Source of the DNA: Rebecca billardiae RCC1528
Lineage: Eukaryota; Protista; Haptophyta
Direction of reading: 5' to 3'
DNA length: 64,000 bases
Assembly (NCBI GenBank): GCA_965240325.2
Contig: OZ251223.1
Coordinates: 62,001-126,000 of the forward strand
Made by a program: the position numbers and the translations under genes. The notes under the pieces are model-generated. The model saw nothing but the letters and a program-made list of their open reading frames with translations, did no database searches and was not told where the DNA came from. Positions 5,511 to 20,994 of this stretch are shown here, in pieces. Every line of letters starts with the position of its first letter. Positions within the stretch are counted from its first letter, which is position 1.

Positions 5511-8500
5511 ATGCGTCGCGGCGCGCTACTCGCGCTGCTTGCGGGCGCGGGCGTCGCCTACGCTCGGAAAGACTCGCCTTCGGACCCTTCGTCCGCCTCG
5601 GGCTCCTCGTCCTCGTGGAGCCACTTCCTGCCCGCCTCGATCGGCGATGCTGGCTTTGTGCCCGACAGCAAGTCGGGCGGTACGCCAGGCGGCATGCCAG
5701 GCGGCGCAAGCGGCGGCAAGAGCGACAGTCCCGGTGGGATTGGCGGGGCAGACCAAGCCTCAAGCTTCATGCCCGCGGGCATCGCTGACTTCATCCCGGG
5801 CGGTGCTGGCTCGTCGGATGGCGCTGGCGGCCCGGCGTCTGACTTCATGCCGGCCGGCGCCTCCAAGCCAAGCGCGCGCGCGAGCGACAACGGCATGTCG
5901 CTCCTGACAAGCCATGCGTCCTCGAGCTTGAAGCACACCTCGAGCGCCAAGGAAGATACCTCCGCGCCTGCGGAGGCTTCTGCCGCGCCCGGCGGCTCGC
6001 CGCCTGGCAGCGGCGGCGGCGGCGACCAGGCATCCCAATACATGCCGAAGGGCATGGGCGACTTCGTGCCCGGCGGCGGCGGCGCCTCCATGGGCGGCGG
6101 CCCGCCTGGTGGCGGCGGTGACCAGGCGTCGCAGTTCATGCCGAAGGGCATGGGCGATTTCATGCCAGGCGGCGGCAGCAGCGGCGGCCCCGGTGGCGGC
6201 AGCAGCGGCGGCCCTGGCGGTGACTTTATGCCCGGCGGCGGCAGCAGCGGCGGCGGCTCACCGATGGGCGGCGGCCCGCCCGGCGGCGCTGGCGGCGGCG
6301 ACCAGGCCTCGCAGTACATGCCCAAGGGCATGGGCAGCTTCATGCCCGGCGGCGGCAGCAGCGGCGGCCCCGGTGGCGGCAGCAGCGGCGGCCCTGGCGG
6401 TGACTTTATGCCCGGCGGCGGCAGCAGCGGCGGCGGCTCGCCGATGGGCGGCGGCCCGCCCGGCGGCGGCGGCGACCAGGCCTCGCAGTACATGCCCAAG
6501 GGCATGGGCAGCTTCATGCCCGGCGGCGGCAGCAGCGGCGGCCCCGGTGGCGGCAGCAGCGGCGGCCCCGGCGGTGACTTTATGCCCGGCGGCGGCAGCA
6601 GCGGCGGCGGCTCGCCGATGGGCGGCGGCCCGCCCGGCGGCGGTGGCGGCGGCGACCAGGCCTCGCAGTTCATGCCCAAGGGCATGGGCAGCTTCATGCC
6701 CGGCGGCGGCAGCGGCAGCCCGGGCGGCAGCTTCATGCCCGGCGGCGGCGGCGATGATTCCGCGGACGCCGATGCCGAGGCGGCTCCCGCGCCCAGCCCG
6801 ACGCCAGACCCAGCGGAGGCGGAGCTCGACTCGGCGTTTAAGCGGCTGACCAGCTCGCAGGACGGCGAGGAGAGCGAGCAGGGCAAGGCGAGCCAGGAGC
6901 ACGCGGAGAAGAAGACGAAGGCGAAGAAGGGCGGCGGCGCAGCCGTCTCGGAAGAGGAGGCGGAGGAGGAGGAGCCGGCTAGCAGCAGCGCTGCCAAGGG
7001 CGAGAAGGAGGAGCAGGAGGAGCCCCCAGCTGGCAGCGGGCAGGAGCAACCCTCAGCGTCGGGCGAGGAGTCGGAGGAGGAGAAGCCGGCCGCCAAGGAC
7101 GCGCACCAGAGCGGCGGCTCCACAGGCGGCCCGCCTGGTGGCGGCGGCGACCAGGCCTCGCAGTACATGCCGAAGGGCATGGGCGATTTCATGCCAGGCG
7201 GCGGCAGCAGCGGCGGCCCCGGTGGCGGCAGCAGCGGCGGCCCCGGCGGTGACTTTATGCCCGGCGGCGGCAGCAGCGGCGGCGGCTCGCCGATGGGCGG
7301 CGGCCCGCCCGGCGGCGGTGGCGGCGGCGACCAGGCCTCGCAGTACATGCCCAAGGGCATGGGCAGCTTCATGCCCGGCGGTGGCAGCAGCGGCGGCCCC
7401 GGTGGCGGCAGCAGCGGCGGCCCCGGCGGTGACTTTATGCCCGGCGGCGGCAGCAGCGGCGGCGGCTCGCCGATGGGCGGCGGCCCGCCCGGCGGCGGCG
7501 GCGGCGGCGACCAGGCCTCGCAGTACATGCCCAAGGGCATGGGCAGCTTCATGCCCGGCGGTGGCAGCAGCGGCGGCCCCGGTGGCGGCAGCAGCGGCGG
7601 CCCCGGCGGTGACTTTATGCCTGGCGGCGGCAGCAGCGGCGGCCCGCCTGGCGGCGGCGGCGGCGACCAGGCCTCGCAGTTCATGCCGAAGGGCATGGGC
7701 AGCTTCATGCCCGGCGGCGGCAGCGGCAGCCCGGGCGGCAGCTTCATGCCCGGTGGCGGCGGCGATGATTCCGCGGACGCCGATGCCGAGGCGGCCCCCG
7801 CGCCCAGCCCGACGCCAGACCCAGAGGAGGCGGAGCTCGACTCGGCGTTTAAGCGGCTGACCAGCTCGCAGGACGGCGAGGAGAGCGAGCAGGGCAAGGC
7901 GAGCCAGGAGCACGCGGAGAAGAAGAAGAAGGCGAAGAAGGGCGGCGGCGCAGCCGTCTCGGAAGAGGAGGCGGAGGAGGAGGAGCCGGCTAGCAGCAGC
8001 GCTGCCAAGGGCGAGAAGGAGGAGCAGGAGGAGCCCCCAGCTGGCAGCGGGCAGGAGCAACCCTCAGCGTCGGGCGAGGAGTCGGAGGAGGAGAAGCCGG
8101 CCGCCAAGGACGCGCACCAGAGCGGCGGCTCCACAGGCGGCCCGCCTGGTGGCGGCGGCGACCAGGCCTCGCAGTACATGCCCAAGGGCATGGGCGATTT
8201 CATGCCCGGCGGCGGCAGCAGCGGCGGCCCCGGCGGCGGCAGCAGCGGCGGCCCCGGCGGTGACTTTATGCCCGGCGGCGGCAGCAGCGGCGGCGGCCCG
8301 CCTGGCGGCGGCGGCGGCGACCAGGCCTCGCAGTTCATGCCGAAGGGCATGGGCGATTTCATGCCAGGCGGCGGCAGCAGCGGCGGCCCCGGTGGCGGCA
8401 GCAGCGGCGGCCCCGGCGGTGACTTTATGCCCGGCGGCGGCAGCAGCGGCGGCGGCTCGCCGATGGGCGGCGGCCCGCCCGGCGGCGGTGGCGGCGGCGA

Positions 8501-13267: not shown

Positions 13268-13838
13268 CCCCCGCCTGCATGCTGACTGATGGCACTGATG
13301 TCAGTGACGATCGTCACCATTCGTCGATTCGACCCATTCCCGATGTGCGCGTGGCGGCGCACGCGCCCGCGCGCCGCCGCCGAGGCTGCGCAGGCAGCGC
13401 CGCAGCGACAGCGCGTATCACGACGCGCGCGCCCGACTCCGCGGCGGCGCCGCCCTCGGCGCGGCGGCACTGTACCGGCGCGGACCGTCACCGTGCGCGC
13501 CGGGCGGTCGTTGACGTTGTTAATTGTATTATATATATATATATAATATATTAATAGTACGTTATTAGCTAGATGCTGATGAATTATAATATATATATAT
13601 ATATTATGACTAGCATCATATATATATATGTATATATAGTTATAATGATGTTGATGACGCGGCATCAGCAGTAGCAGCGCAGCATACCGCGGCGGGGCGG
13701 GCGGCGGCCCGTTGCCACTGTTGCCAGCGCGCGGCCGCGGGCCTCCGCATCACGGTTGCCCCGCCCCCTGCCCCTGGCCCTGTGCTGCGCGCATGTGCGC
13801 GGGCCACCAGACCCCGCTGCCGCCCCGCGGCCGGCCAG

Positions 13839-14726: not shown

Positions 14727-14964
14727 GATGCGAAGATTCCTCGTCGGCGCAACGATGCACGACGCCATCGCGTTCGTCTTGGACGTGGGGTCAAGTGGGG
14801 CCACCCGTCCCAGAAAGCCCGTGAGCCCGTCTTCGGCTCAGCGGGCTCATGGGGCCGCCAGACGTCACGGGGGGCCGGGCGGCGAGACAGCGCCCGCCCC
14901 CACGCGGACGCTGACTCAAGCCGCACCCTGCCCCGGCGCGGCGATCCAACGCCGAGGGAGGGCG

Positions 14965-15402
14965 GGCGGGAGGCGGAGGAGCGCAGCTGGTTGTCCGTGC
15001 GGCTGCTCGGCGCCAAGCGTGGCCCGTCGGCTGGGTTTGGTAGTCGGGCGGCGGTCCGGTCGGCGGTCGGGCAGGGCGAGGTGCGCCGTGCGGTCGGGCG
15101 GGAAAGCGGACGGCTGCTGGGCGAAACTCGCTCCTGTTCGCCAAAGCCGGTCACTGCCCGTCAACTCCCGGCGCGCGCTCACTTTTCTGCGGTCCGCGCC
15201 AAAAGCGAGCTGCCACACGCTCGGAACGCTGTCCGGGGGCGCGCTGCGAGCTCCGAGCTCCGAGCCCGTCCGGGCGGGGGTGCGGTCGGAGGGGCGCTGG
15301 AGGAGGGTATCGGGCGGCGGCGAAGCGGCGCCGGCAGTCATAACGCGATAACCGCCGCAGACTGCCAAACCCGCCACTCCAGTCGCGTCGGCCATCGCCC
15401 CA
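14965..15402. repeat. Split direct repeat A2
   Basis: Matches 18884-19321. I noticed one substitution (GCTCCTGTTC vs GCTGCTGTTC). Confidence 0.95.
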
Positions 15403-15639
15403 TAACCGCGCGCGTCGCGCTCCGCCTTATGGCGGTCCGGTGTTTACGTTGGGCGGCTGCCTAGCTTGCCTGGGGCCGCCAGACGTCACGGGGGGCCGGG
15501 CGGCGAGACAGCGCCCGCCCACAGGGGCGCAGCGCCAGGCGCCACGCCGGCATGGGCGGCGTCGGCCGGCGCGGTCGAGGCCAGGCCCGGCCCCGACCCC
15601 CAGAGACGCTGCGCCCGGCCACGCCCCGACGCACGCCGT

Positions 15640-16100
15640 CAGCGCCAAGCGCGTGCCGTCGGGCGGGGCAGCTCCCGGGAAGTACGTGCGGGGCGCAGGC
15701 CCCGCCCACCGCCCCGCAGCGGTGATCTCGGCCGCGGGAAGCCCCAGGAACGGCCAGCGTCGCCACGGCCGAGCGTCGAACCGAGTTGGCGCCAACACAC
15801 GTTGTGGGAGCCCCAGCGCCCGACACTCATCGTGCAGCCACGCCAGATACGCCGCGCGAAAGCCTCGCACGCGCGCCAACCCGCCCGGTGTCGGCCGTCG
15901 ACGGCGGGCAGCACCCCGAGCTCCGCGAAGCGACGTCCAGCCAGCGTGCGTAGCCCTGAATCGCCATGCGCCCCTTGGACCTTGGACGCGAAGGGCGAAG
16001 CGCCGAAGCCCGCTGTCCGGCTGTGGCAAACCGCCGGGCCGCCTGCGCTGTGGGAGCGATGGCGGCCGGTGGAAGCGGCGGGGAGTAGGCGACGCACGCC
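15640..16100 (-). pseudogene. Frameshifted C-terminal tyrosine recombinase remnant
   Basis: Successive frames give FASKVQGAHG (Lys-beta-like), GANSVRRSAVATLA (HxxR box-like) and LGLPAAEITAAGRWAGPAPRTY (GRW...Y catalytic Tyr box of DIRS-group YRs). Confidence 0.65.
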
Positions 16101-16152
16101 GCGCGAACGAGGACGGTCGCGCGGCACGCGAGCGACGGCGGACGCGCCGCGG

Positions 16153-16930
16153 ATGATCGGCGCGCACGCATGACGATCGGCGCATGATGATCGGCGCGCG
16201 CGCATGATCGGCGCATGATGATCGGCGCGCGCGCATGATGATCGGCGCGCGCGCATGATGATCGGCGCGCGCGCATGATGATCGGCGCATGATGATCGGC
16301 GCGGGCGCATGATCGGCGCATGATCGGCGCATGATGATCGGCGCGCGCGCGTGATCGGCGCATGATGATCGGCGCGGGCGCATGATCGGCGCATGATCGG
16401 CGCGTGATGATCGGCGCGCGCGCATGATCGGCGCATGATCGGCGCATGATGATCGGCGCGGGCGCATGATCGGCGCATGATCGGCGCATGATCGGCGCAT
16501 GATCGGCGCATGATCGGCGCATGATGATCGGCGCGCGCGCATGATCGGCGCATGATGATCGGCGCGGGCGCATGATCGGCGCATGATCGGCGCATGATCG
16601 GCGCATGATGATCGGCGCGCGCGCATGATCGGCGCATGATGATCGGCGCGGGCGCATGATCGGCGCATGATCGGCGCATGATCGGCGCATGATCGGCGCA
16701 TGATCGGCGCATGATGATCGGCGCGCGCGCATGATCGGCGCATGATGATCGGCGCGCGCGCATGATGATCGGCGCATGACGATCGGCGCGCGCGCATGAT
16801 CGGCGCAAGATGACCGGCGCGCGCGCATGATGATCGGCGCGCGCGCATGATGATCGGCGTGCGCGCGTGATGATCGGCGCGCGCGCATGATGCTCGGCGC
16901 ATGTTGACCGGCGCGCGCGCATGATGAGCG
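16153..16930. repeat. Modular minisatellite built from (ATG)1-2 ATC GGCGC (GCGCGC/GGGCGC)0-1
   Basis: Read directly; the centre is homogeneous and both edges are degenerate. Confidence 0.95.
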
Positions 16931-17029
16931 GCGCGGACGGTGGCGCGCGGCGCCGCCACCCGCCGCCGCGGCGTCGAAGGCAGCAGCAGCGAACGCCGAT
17001 GGTTCTGCGCAGACGGTTGGCCGCCGGCC

Positions 17030-18875
17030 GACCGGTACGCGGCGAACAGCGGGCACGCCGCCGCGGAGCAGTCGCCGAATAGCTGGTGCCGTAGGCAGCC
17101 GTGCGCGCGGAAGACGCGGTGGTTGGCCTCCGAGAGCAGGGGCCGCCCGCTCGCGTCGCACACACCCCCGTACCGCGCCAGCTCGCGCGCCAGCGTCAGC
17201 GGCGGCACGCCCCCCGCAGAGGCGGCGCCCGGGAACGGTTGCGGCAGCGTCCGCGGCGGCCCGCCTGGCGGCGGGGGCGGCGGGCCGGGAGGCGGCGCCT
17301 GCGGCCCCGGCGGGTACGGCGCCGGTGTGTACGGCGCCGGCCCGGGCGCCCAGGCCGAACCCGCCGGCGGCACGTACGTGAGCGCGAGCGGCGCGGGCCC
17401 GGGCTGCGCCCCCTTACCGGCGGCGCCGGCGGGGCCGGCGCTGCCGCCTGCAGCCCCTGCGGGTACGGCGCCGGCGGGCACAGCGCCGGGCGGGGCGCCC
17501 AGGACGATCCTGCCGAGGGTGCGCACGTGAACGAGAGCGGCACGGGCCCGTGCGGCGCCACCTGCATCGGCGCCGACCACGACCAGCAGCCCCACTCCGC
17601 TGCGCCGGGCGCCGCCCCGCCAAAGCCGGGCGACAGGTCCTGCACCATCAGCGACGGCGGCGGCGGCGGAATCGGCATGCTCCCACCGTAGACGCGCATC
17701 AGCGGGCGCATGGCAAACTTGTCATGGAAGGGGTTGTCGTTCTTGTAGCAGGCGAAGAACGGCTCCCGCCCGCCACCGATGCTCGCCACCAGCGCCGCCA
17801 CGCCCGAGCGCGCGTCGAGCACCCGCCCGAGGCTCTCCGAGAATTCAGAGTGGAACTGTGCCGCCGCCCGCCAGTCGCGCGCCTCAGCGAGCTGCATCAC
17901 GAAGCCCCTGTACTCGCGCAGCACCTCGGCGTCACCCGCGCGCGTGCAGAAGCCCTCGGCCTGCTCGACGAGCAGTATGAAGTGGAGCTGGCTGAGGAGC
18001 TGGTAGGCCTCGCGCAGCTCGCCCTTCGTGTTGAAGTAGACGCTTCGATCGACCTGCGCGTGCGGCACCTCAGCCATGTTGAAGGACTCCCAGACGACCG
18101 AACCCGCCGCGTTCGCCGGCACGCCCAAGCCGCGCCGCATGGACGAAAACGCCCCGCGAGCCGGGAAGCTCGGCCTCCCCCCCCCGGTCCCACGGAGTTG
18201 GCCGCCCGCGCCGCCCGCGAGCGCGCAAGCGTTCGCGAACTCGTGCGCGGCCCCCGCAAGGAAGCCAGCCCCACCGAAGGGGACGGGATGCGGCACGAGC
18301 GAGCTGGGCGGGGCGAGGGGCGCCGCCGCGTCCGGCGCCGGCCGGACGCCCCAGGGCGGCGGCCGCGGCGGCGGGACAGAGGTGGGCCCCGTCGGTGCGC
18401 CGTCGGCGGGCGGCGCGCCCGAGTGGCCACCGACCGCCCCATCACCCGCACCGTTGCCGTGGACGCCGCGAAGGAAGTCAGTGAGGCTGTTCGCGAGGTC
18501 GGGTGGTAGGCCAGTCGGAATGCCCGGCTGGCCAGCGGGCGCGGCCGGGGGGGCGGGTGCCTGCGGCTGCGCAGCAGCCGCCGTCGACGCGGCGCCGGCC
18601 GCTCGCCCGGGCGCGGGCGCGGGAGCAGCCCCCGCCGTCGTCCTGGCACCGGCCGCCGGCGCGGTCGCGGGCGGCGGCTGGACCGGCAGCGGGCCGAGCT
18701 GCTGCACCGGCGCGGCAGGCGGCAGGGTACTTGCTTGGCGGCCACCCGCGCGCCCACCCCGGCCCCGACCGCGGCCCCCGCCGCCGCGCCCACGAGCGCC
18801 GAGGACCTGCTGGTTGACGACGGCCGCTGCCGCCGCGCGGCGCCGCGACACGCGTTGGACTGCAGGCACCGCCAT
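17030..18875 (-). pseudogene. gag-like ORF1 of the YR retroelement, probably frameshifted near 17.5 kb, with a C-terminal Cys-rich finger-like remnant
   Basis: ATG at 18875 lies just after A1. Pro/Ala-rich arms flank a helical core (LREYRGFVMQLAEARDWRAAAQFHSEF). A second frame continues to CLRHQLFGDCSAAACP. Confidence 0.6.
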
Positions 18876-18883
18876 GTCGGGAC

Positions 18884-19321
18884 GGCGGGAGGCGGAGGAG
18901 CGCAGCTGGTTGTCCGTGCGGCTGCTCGGCGCCAAGCGTGGCCCGTCGGCTGGGTTTGGTAGTCGGGCGGCGGTCCGGTCGGCGGTCGGGCAGGGCGAGG
19001 TGCGCCGTGCGGTCGGGCGGGAAAGCGGACGGCTGCTGGGCGAAACTCGCTGCTGTTCGCCAAAGCCGGTCACTGCCCGTCAACTCCCGGCGCGCGCTCA
19101 CTTTTCTGCGGTCCGCGCCAAAAGCGAGCTGCCACACGCTCGGAACGCTGTCCGGGGGCGCGCTGCGAGCTCCGAGCTCCGAGCCCGTCCGGGCGGGGGT
19201 GCGGTCGGAGGGGCGCTGGAGGAGGGTATCGGGCGGCGGCGAAGCGGCGCCGGCAGTCATAACGCGATAACCGCCGCAGACTGCCAAACCCGCCACTCCA
19301 GTCGCGTCGGCCATCGCCCCA
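18884..19321. repeat. Split direct repeat A1
   Basis: Matches 14965-15402 and ends 8 bp upstream of the gag-like ATG. Confidence 0.95.
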
Positions 19322-20994
19322 AAACATTCCGCCATGGCTCACACTCGATGATCTCGAATTGCAAGGCAGTGCACTGCCACTGGTACCTGGGACCACCCTG
19401 GCACAGTGTTGGGCTTGTATGCTGTTGGCAATGGCATACCCCCGCCCCCTCTGGAGGCGGGCTGTCCACAGTGGAGTGGTGTCAAGGCACTTGGTGTCTC
19501 GGTCAGTGGTTTGAGGTTGGGTGAGGGTGGTGCTGGTTGGTTGGGGGCTGGCCAGGGTAGGGCTGGAGGCTTCGGCCGCCAGTCCAGTGATGACTGATCT
19601 GTGATCACCCGTCGGAGCCCGTTATAAAGCAGTCAGTAGGGGAATTTTGGAATGATGTTTTGAGCTCAGTGATTACGCAATGGGCTGGTAACGAATAGCT
19701 GCGCGGGTATTTTCAAATACCAGGGAGCCTTGACGGGTAGGGGGCTGTGTGCGAAGCAAGCCTCGACGGGCGTCGGCCAACCCGTCGGCCACAGGATGCC
19801 CACTTTTGCCCGTTCATCGGCCAGTGGCCGACTACGACGAATAAATGCATAAATGAATATATATATATATATATATTCATTCATCCCTTTTTCTTTTTCG
19901 GCAAAAGATTATTCACCACTCGGGCAGAACGTGTGGTACCCCAACGAGGTCGGCTTGACTCTGTCTGGGCATGATCTCGTCGCAGAAGCTGCTTGCAGCC
20001 GACTACTGTGCTGCGGCAGCCACCGCTCGTCCGCTCGCCGCGAGGCTGCCGCAGTCGCCGCGTCGGCAGACGTGGTCTGCGTGAGACGATGCCGCAGCGC
20101 TGCTGGCAGTGCAAGCGCGAGCCGTGGCAGAAGTAGGGGTCGTGGGCGCGGGCGTGGGCGCGGTCGCGGGCGCGGGTGCGGCCGCTGACTCGCCCTCGGA
20201 GTCTCGCCGGGCTCGCCGCCTGCTGCACCTCGCGTCCTTCACTCGCCGGGCCGGCGCGCAGAATCGGCAAATACATCGCAATAGACATAGTGGCCTGTAA
20301 CTGATATAGTATATCAGATTAACACACACAGGCACACACACACACCTGCCAAGCTCGGTCGAGACCGCCACTGGGGCTCAACAAGTCCACCAGTTGGGTC
20401 GGCCGAGCCCCGGGGCCGCCCTCTCGAACTACGACCGTGCAGAGTCGGACAGTGCTGCAGCCCGCGCGGCGTGCTCACGCGGCCATCACGCGCCAGCGCC
20501 GTGGCCGTGCCGTCCGGCGCGGCCTACGAGTACGGCGGTCCGGCCGCCGGACGGCCATCGGCCAATACCCATCGGCCAGAGATGGATGGTCGACCGCTAA
20601 CCATCGGCCATGGCCGCCTAGCGGCCAATATCATCGGTCATGGCCGGCCATATAGGCCTTGATTCGCACATAGGTAGGGGGCCGCCAGACGGGTGGATGG
20701 TAGCAGCCGCGGGCGGGACTGCCGCGATTCAAAGCCATCGATCAGTCAAACGGTCGTCCGGTCAGGCGGTCAAGCCTCAAGGGAGTCAGTCCGGACTCCG
20801 GTCATAACGGGCCCGCGCCTGATAATATATGATTTGGGCATGTGGAGCCTAGTATATTAGTCACCTGACTGATCACGCCCAGGCGAGCCAGCCAGCCAGG
20901 GCACAACTTCTAGAGCGGCTCAGGGGGCGGCGGAGTGGCAGCGCGCGCCGCTCCACCGACTACTTCCAGCCGCCAGCGCGCATGAGCCCGGCCC

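Follow-up and report, generated by a model that had tools for sequence, protein, structure and literature searches.

A probable recent, defective copy of a Ngaro-like retrotransposon family that encodes no intact tyrosine recombinase in Rebecca billardiae

The window analyzed here, a 64,000-nucleotide stretch of contig OZ251223.1 from the haptophyte Rebecca billardiae RCC1528, holds on its minus strand, at positions 14850-19321, an element built from split direct repeats. We consider it likely that this element belongs to a Ngaro-like family of tyrosine-recombinase retrotransposons, of which it is a defective copy of very recent origin, that its deletion form was dead on arrival, and that its recombinase acted from trans at the junction between repeats B and A (the B|A junction). 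An initial annotation of the window had described a split-repeat layout of A1, open reading frames (ORFs), B1, A2 and B2, including a gag-like ORF, and both the layout and the ORF were borne out. In minus-strand order the element reads A1, body, B1, A2, a segment that we call s, and B2, and its repeats were verified and recur at about 16 loci.

Our search covered the window's own assembly, a 72-Mb GC-rich genome. Repeat A occurs there at 30 high-identity places, which pair into about 16 elements on 11 contigs that are 99.3-100% identical. Three longer copies (L061, L062 and L063) were used for comparison. Full-length copies measure about 6.4 kb and carry a gag-like ORF and a reverse transcriptase (RT)/RNase H ORF, in the layout A1 - gag - RT/RNase H - satellite - recombinase remnant - B1 A2 - s - B2. 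The RT/RNase H ORF is open, with no stops, in seven copies, where it spans 575-576 aa. The window copy has no RT, as had been remarked from the start, and the full-length relatives with RT/RNase H that were then sought do exist. Internal deletions affect at least 7 of the 16 copies, each one different. Separately, one locus (L027, C21:21079-21507) consists of a solo A repeat (positions 2-430) that has neither body nor s nor B and sits within simple sequence rich in TA/GTA.

All parts of the window copy lie on the minus strand. A1, the 5' repeat (18884..19321), and A2, the 3' copy of A (14965..15402), align over 438 nt with one mismatch. The element proper begins at 19320 with GGGGCG; the T at 19321 is variable among copies. 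B1 (15403..15523) is a complete B of 121-122 nt whose GGTTAT end abuts A2. Beyond A2 follow s (14903..14964), a conserved 62-nt module, and B2 (14850..14902), which is truncated to 53-54 of 122 nt and forms the 3' end of this copy. Over the 53 nt present in both (15523-15471 in B1 and 14902-14850 in B2), the B repeats differ at one base. The initial annotation had called B very short, which proved to be an artefact of the 3'-truncated B2, as B is 122 nt in other copies. It had also described unique spacers, which measure 68 nt (B1 to A2) and 62 nt (A2 to B2). The first of these belongs to the 122-nt B, as its 3' part, and looked unique only because B2 of the window copy is cut short; the second, s, is real but conserved in related families.

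In the body, the gag-like ORF1 remnant (17004..18875) starts from an ATG at 18875 and stops at 17004-17006, ahead of the zinc knuckle. The same three positions (17004..17006) mark the junction of a private 1,995-bp internal deletion with 3-bp microhomology, as judged against full-length copies; alignment to L061, L062 and L063 places it between body positions 1880 and 1881 of the window copy. The deleted segment (L061:3408-5402) holds the end of ORF1 with its Cys/His knuckle and the entire RT/RNase H ORF. A modular 11/20/31-bp satellite (16152..16973), found in all copies between RT/RNase H and the recombinase remnant, comes next. Additionally, two private changes affect the gag of the window copy, a missense change at 17752 and a 1-nt deletion near 17415 causing a frameshift. 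The copy has about five point differences in 4.5 kb, and its private changes, deletion and variants alike, were found in no other copy of the assembly. It has probably left no descendants.

One of the private variants falls in repeat A, where position 22 is T in both A1 and A2 of the window copy and G in all other copies. Similarly, a copy on C5 has a private variant at A position 257 in both its A repeats. Because A1 and A2 of one element have such private variants in common, both must be copied from one template per cycle. A repeat-annealing model for Ngaro/PAT elements holds that A1 equals A2 at insertion (PMC6681497), and the window and C5 copies behave as it predicts.

The recombinase remnant consists of two pieces. 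The C-terminal one (15490..15858) aligns to residues 240-362 of an intact 365-residue recombinase encoded at another locus of this genome, L066, with 60% amino acid identity (E 4.7e-27), and retains the GRW...Y tail; a further comparison matched the remnant with E 8e-32. At the DNA level, the remnant and the L066 gene are 85.6% identical over 540 bp. About 15 codons of the C-terminal piece are out of frame, and its box II motif lies in another frame. The N-terminal piece (15850..15968) amounts to about 40 codons, and its 119 bp match the start of the L066 ORF with 83% DNA identity. The remnant proposed by the initial annotation is therefore genuine and, as proposed, frameshifted. The damage is not confined to the window: the central 600 bp of the recombinase gene is missing from all 15 family copies that reach this region, and every RT-bearing copy of the family is without the recombinase core. 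These alignments show a family-wide loss of the recombinase, in a family descended from a recombinase-encoding ancestor. The intact partner that had been postulated was thus not found among the RT-bearing copies.

Other searches with the remnant were less informative. Pfam gave no match to it, and tblastn with the L067 recombinase, from another family of this genome, returned nothing. A profile of barnacle-type and other recombinases gave a 25-column match at the correct C-terminal motif (P = 0.006), too weak to stand alone. The identity of the remnant could be settled because the cognate sibling recombinase of L066 was available for comparison. With repeats that occur genome-wide and a recombinase similarity that is significant, neither a locus-bound repeat nor an absence of recombinase similarity was encountered.

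The L066 gene emerged from a recombinase profile run over the genome, which gave 21 matches. One of these, at C1:42444-43286, lies in a region to which the family's 3' body had aligned with 84% DNA identity. The element around it (L066:1570-4136, equal to C1:41569-44135, minus strand) is a 2,567-bp RT-less sibling with its own A1, B1, A2, s and B2. Its A copies are identical, its 5' flank is the canonical TTTC, its B2 is full, and it is single-copy. It codes only for an open 365-aa tyrosine recombinase and a short piece of the gag N-terminus. Alignment of this protein to the recombinase profile by hhalign gave a probability of 99.3% (E 3.7e-20, 281 columns). It retains the Arg, Lys, Arg, Trp and Tyr residues and has Asn instead of the box II His.

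Assignment of the family itself comes from its full-length copies. A 573-aa ORF of L061 matches PF00078 at 34 bits (cut-off 29.6) and has a weak RNase H-like match too. An exhaustive HMMER search with the family RT returned 9,323 homologues, among them two RT-recombinase fusions (P0029 and P0072) and one RT with a Dam methyltransferase domain (P0132). At two foreign loci with the order gag, RT, recombinase, L072 and L073, gag and RT are followed by a third ORF of 301 or 346 aa, and these two third ORFs are mutually homologous; that of L072 matches integrases weakly, contains HSLR...GRW...Y motifs and has relatives whose annotation reads Tyr recombinase domain protein. The contigs of the closest foreign RT relatives were too short to reveal a recombinase. 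Full-length ORF1 and ORF1 of the nearest foreign relative match in the C-terminal Cys/His motifs (E 2e-8). A Pfam scan of all long ORFs of the full-length element found no DDE integrase, no protease and no Dam or other methyltransferase, and a scan of its 3' ORFs gave no integrase match.

Taken together, the RT/RNase H of the full-length copies is kin to that of the recombinase-encoding retroelements of the DIRS order, while the tyrosine recombinase is no longer encoded and only its two end pieces remain in 15 copies. Within that order, the arrangement A1 ... B1 A2 B2, here with the 62-nt s between A2 and B2, and the order gag, RT/RNase H, recombinase (as a remnant 3' of RT) without a methyltransferase are those of Ngaro-like elements. 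A PAT-like or DIRS1-like assignment does not fit, as there is no methyltransferase and the repeats are direct, not inverted. Neither does a Gypsy or Copia long terminal repeat (LTR) element, given that DDE integrase and protease are absent and no target duplication was seen. Layout and RT relatives therefore support an assignment of the family to the Ngaro-like tyrosine-recombinase retrotransposons.

The two ends of the copies differ in precision. Wherever a copy has an A1 5' end, that end is exact, and GGGGCG is preceded there by a T-rich host tetranucleotide such as TTTC, ATTC or TTTT, with TTTY the commonest. At the last four 5' flank positions, 44 of 56 bases are A or T, in a genome with about 30% A/T. 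At the internal B|A junction, TTAT stands ahead of the same GGGGCG. Because the flank tetranucleotide, mostly TTTY, differs from the element's own TTAT, the flank bases come from the target. At the 3' end, six of 15 copies end exactly at the B terminus. The other nine are ragged and stop at 181, 176, 171, 115 (the window copy), 114, 106, 76, 14 and 12 nt of the 184-nt tail formed by s and B. By flank comparison only, no target duplication was found in the paired flanks of the copies, and one truncated copy has a possible 4-nt repeat (ATTC) at its flanks. The copy on C14 (L061) lacks A1 save about its last 3 nt, with the break almost exactly at the A1/body boundary, and is flanked by a perfect 330-bp host duplication (L061:1190-1519 and 7626-7955) corresponding to the 5' end of a Sel1-repeat gene; this insertion is aberrant. 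That copies otherwise identical have ragged 3' ends and internal deletions of their own points to errors of reverse transcription or integration and not to later decay.

Some further features of insertion sites were considered. Two copies, L018 on C18 and L020 on C11, both stand directly after the same ~44-nt palindromic repeat ending in GATTC. Their flanks are less alike than the elements, which looks like repeated use of one site type. Targeting of TA microsatellites was rejected, as only two aberrant copies (on C26 and C21) lie in TA tracts. The window itself has (TA)n-rich tracts at 13522-13646 and 19844-19877, about 1.2 kb from one end of the element and 0.5 kb from the other, with no insertion within them. 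Hairpins were likewise dismissed as an insertion signal, since the family's 3' flanks are no more structured than control windows (p = 0.95). Both small hairpins reported in the initial annotation exist, but they are not family features: that at 14822-14849 is host flank, and the one inside B (CCGCC/GGCGG) lacks conservation among sibling families.

The B|A junction links the family to other elements of the genome. An exact 25-nt B|A junction occurs 50 times, compared to 0 in a reversed control. Fifteen of these junctions belong to the RT family, one to the C1 sibling and about 34 to non-coding elements. None of the 50 lies beside any other recombinase gene from the genome profile search, those of an autonomous sister family included. 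In this assembly, the junction type is linked to seven RT genes and one intact recombinase gene.

Four families could be aligned: the RT family, the recombinase-only sibling, a non-coding 4.2-kb family (L064) and that of L065. Two blocks are near-invariant over all four. One comprises the end of B and the first ~90 nt of A; the other, the most conserved stretch, comprises the end of A and s, about 110 nt in alignment columns 560-670. The first half of B is also common to the four families, and the middle of A has diverged. Segment s is 90-97% identical in three sibling families, above most of A or B, and is retained in every copy that reaches that far 3'. Such conservation of the A end and s suggests a cis-acting signal. 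A 16-nt complementarity between s and A was set aside; it occurs between families only, never within one.

Junction and s of the C1 sibling are the same as in the RT family, and its 5' A block is nearly identical. The L064 element (L064:1781-6676, on C10) and at least 20 similar loci make up the non-coding, satellite-rich 4.2-kb split-repeat family, which resembles the RT family at 89% in the A 5' block, 90% in s and 83% in B and is presumably mobilized in trans. On C7, L065:2811-3526 (minus strand) is the 3' module of another sibling family, with an A that is 69% identical and a B2 truncated at 49 nt. This module adjoins a further A-like block in opposite orientation.

These observations can be assembled into a mechanism. 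The family's RNA would be reverse-transcribed by the family's own gag and RT, and the split repeats would rebuild the element ends. A tyrosine recombinase supplied in trans would then exchange strands at the B|A junction with a T-rich target, which would leave the tetranucleotide of the target on the left of the element and the element's own TTAT on its right. An outcome of this kind, target at the left and element at the right, has been proposed for elements of the DIRS order, and the RT of DIRS-1 acts in trans (PMC7192593). The most likely source of the recombinase would be the single RT-less 2.6-kb sibling on C1. The single transposition event behind the window copy would have produced both its deletion and its 3' truncation, and the copy was probably dead on arrival.

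Several observations weigh against this account. The recombinase of the C1 sibling has Asn for the box II His and, being single-copy, could itself be inert. The sister family has no exact junction near its recombinase genes, but a diverged one is possible. Additionally, a clean two-site recombinase reaction predicts neither the ragged 3' ends of 9 of 15 copies nor the C14 copy with its missing A1 and 330-bp flank duplication.

The last two observations are accommodated by an alternative in which the tyrosine recombinase is no longer used and linear complementary DNA (cDNA) is caught at chromosome breaks or by host repair via T-rich 5' microhomology. Such capture would also suit a family with about 16 young copies and a recombinase decayed in every one of them, and linear single-stranded cDNA is the main DIRS-1 intermediate (PMC7192593). 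We nevertheless regard it as unlikely. The 5' ends are exact in all copies with an A1 5' end, and in six cases the 3' end falls precisely at the B terminus. A T-rich flank tetranucleotide drawn from the target fits a site-preferring enzyme better than random capture. Finally, the junction block is invariant over four diverged families, which argues that a protein still reads it.

If a recombinase does act on the junction, it might be borrowed from autonomous sister families instead of the C1 sibling. Several families of this genome have intact RT and recombinase genes, in more copies than the single C1 gene. The nearest has an open RT (51% identical) and a recombinase (47% identical) at C20:1653908-1657134 and C5:423361-426572, adjacent to each other at both loci; at C17:970781-971578, only its recombinase frame was seen. 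A further family, with an RT that is 33-34% identical, has six 364-aa recombinase ORFs. We judge this source to be rather improbable, because the vicinity of those recombinase genes has none of the 50 exact junctions and because the sister recombinase reaches only 47% identity, while the family's remnant has its direct homologue in the C1 gene (85.6% at the DNA level).

The initial annotation had taken the window element for a non-autonomous derivative mobilized in trans by an intact partner. Its starting points stand: the copy has no RT and its ORFs are decayed. A deletion lineage mobilized repeatedly by an autonomous element would account for A1 and A2 repeats that are near-identical despite decayed ORFs, and many copies of the family are internally deleted. 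The 4.2-kb non-coding family, with the same junction and at least 20 copies, indicates that trans-mobilization occurs in this group. However, every deleted copy has its own deletion, the window's deletion and private variants occur nowhere else, and no member of the family is fully autonomous. The 1,995-bp deletion form is unique to this locus, which leaves its mobilization in trans, as a non-autonomous lineage, unsupported. It is simpler to read the copy as the defective product of one transposition event or as having lost the segment in place, and we consider the deletion lineage improbable. We give practically no credence to local segmental duplication, nor to an ordinary LTR retrotransposon whose LTRs were rearranged, since, for all that direct repeats flank an ORF-containing body, about 16 dispersed copies exclude local duplication, integrase, protease and a visible target duplication are all wanting, the RT relatives carry tyrosine recombinases and a recombinase remnant is present.

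The preferred account, a dead-on-arrival copy whose recombinase came from trans, admits a broader and more tentative extension. The 50 junction-sharing elements might form a community with divided labor, in which RT comes only from the window family (seven genes), recombinase comes only from the C1 sibling (one gene) and about 34 elements encode nothing. We hold this to be possible, at somewhat less than even chances. If true, the coding partners would be mutually dependent, and losing a single gene would freeze the whole group.

Ngaro-like elements of the DIRS order are known from zebrafish, fungi and Cafeteria burkhardae (PMC8547959). Like them, the present family has the arrangement A1-[ORFs]-B1A2B2 and the order gag, RT/RNase H, recombinase without a methyltransferase, and is GC-rich at about 6 kb. 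Ngaro-like elements insert without target duplication, and none was seen in the flanks compared here. Unlike them, the present family retains only the two ends of the recombinase gene in each copy, a 0.8-kb satellite stands between RT and the remnant, the 62-nt s separates A2 from B2, and the 3' ends are often ragged. Split direct repeats and abundant short non-coding derivatives also characterize VIPER/SIRE of trypanosomes; SIRE consists of A2, about 30 bp of unique internal region and B2 (PMC6681497), and this make-up is a precedent for a spacer between A2 and B2. In VIPER, however, the order is gag, recombinase, RT/RNase H, and its RT groups apart, whereas here RT precedes recombinase. Comparison also extends to TOC1 and TOC3 and to PAT-like elements, from green algae and nematodes. 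TOC1 is likewise a non-autonomous split-repeat element that depends on coding relatives (PMC9940879), and it too has an algal host. PAT/DIRS1-type relatives carry a methyltransferase next to RT/RNase H, as P0132 does, and the window family has none. The likeness to DIRS-1 of Dictyostelium lies in an RT that acts in trans and in a short circle-junction sequence proposed to match the target; the role of the DIRS-1 recombinase itself is unproven experimentally (PMC7192593).

The element's surroundings were also considered. Its 3' end had been placed about 125 bp upstream of a fibrillin ATG. The distance holds for the second ATG of the same-orientation downstream ORF (14727, 123 nt), but the first ATG (14768) is nearer, at 82 nt. 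This ORF resembles PAP/fibrillin by language-model features (0.93), and Pfam gave no match to it even at E 10. The insertion could affect this fibrillin-like ORF, to judge from its position. On the other side, the 5' flank is a copy of an abundant ~250-bp repeat (19336-19584) that ends 14 nt from the element; a first look gave 474 candidates, and copies 94-95% identical occur on many contigs. Sequence 5' of A1 that is common to the window and L064 is this unrelated repeat and was rejected as part of the element.

Taken alone, the window copy is an ordinary dead retrotransposon, and the family is of greater interest. It multiplied recently even though no member encodes the enzyme that defines its order, and just one matching intact recombinase gene is present in the genome, where it occupies a small element of its own. 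According to the literature, the specificity of such recombinases awaits experimental testing (PMC7192593). Here RT and recombinase reside on different elements, with a single recombinase gene and 50 identical junctions, so that this specificity could be addressed by disrupting one gene. Models of split-repeat integration are also constrained by 5' ends that are exact, 3' ends that are ragged and a T-rich 5' target.

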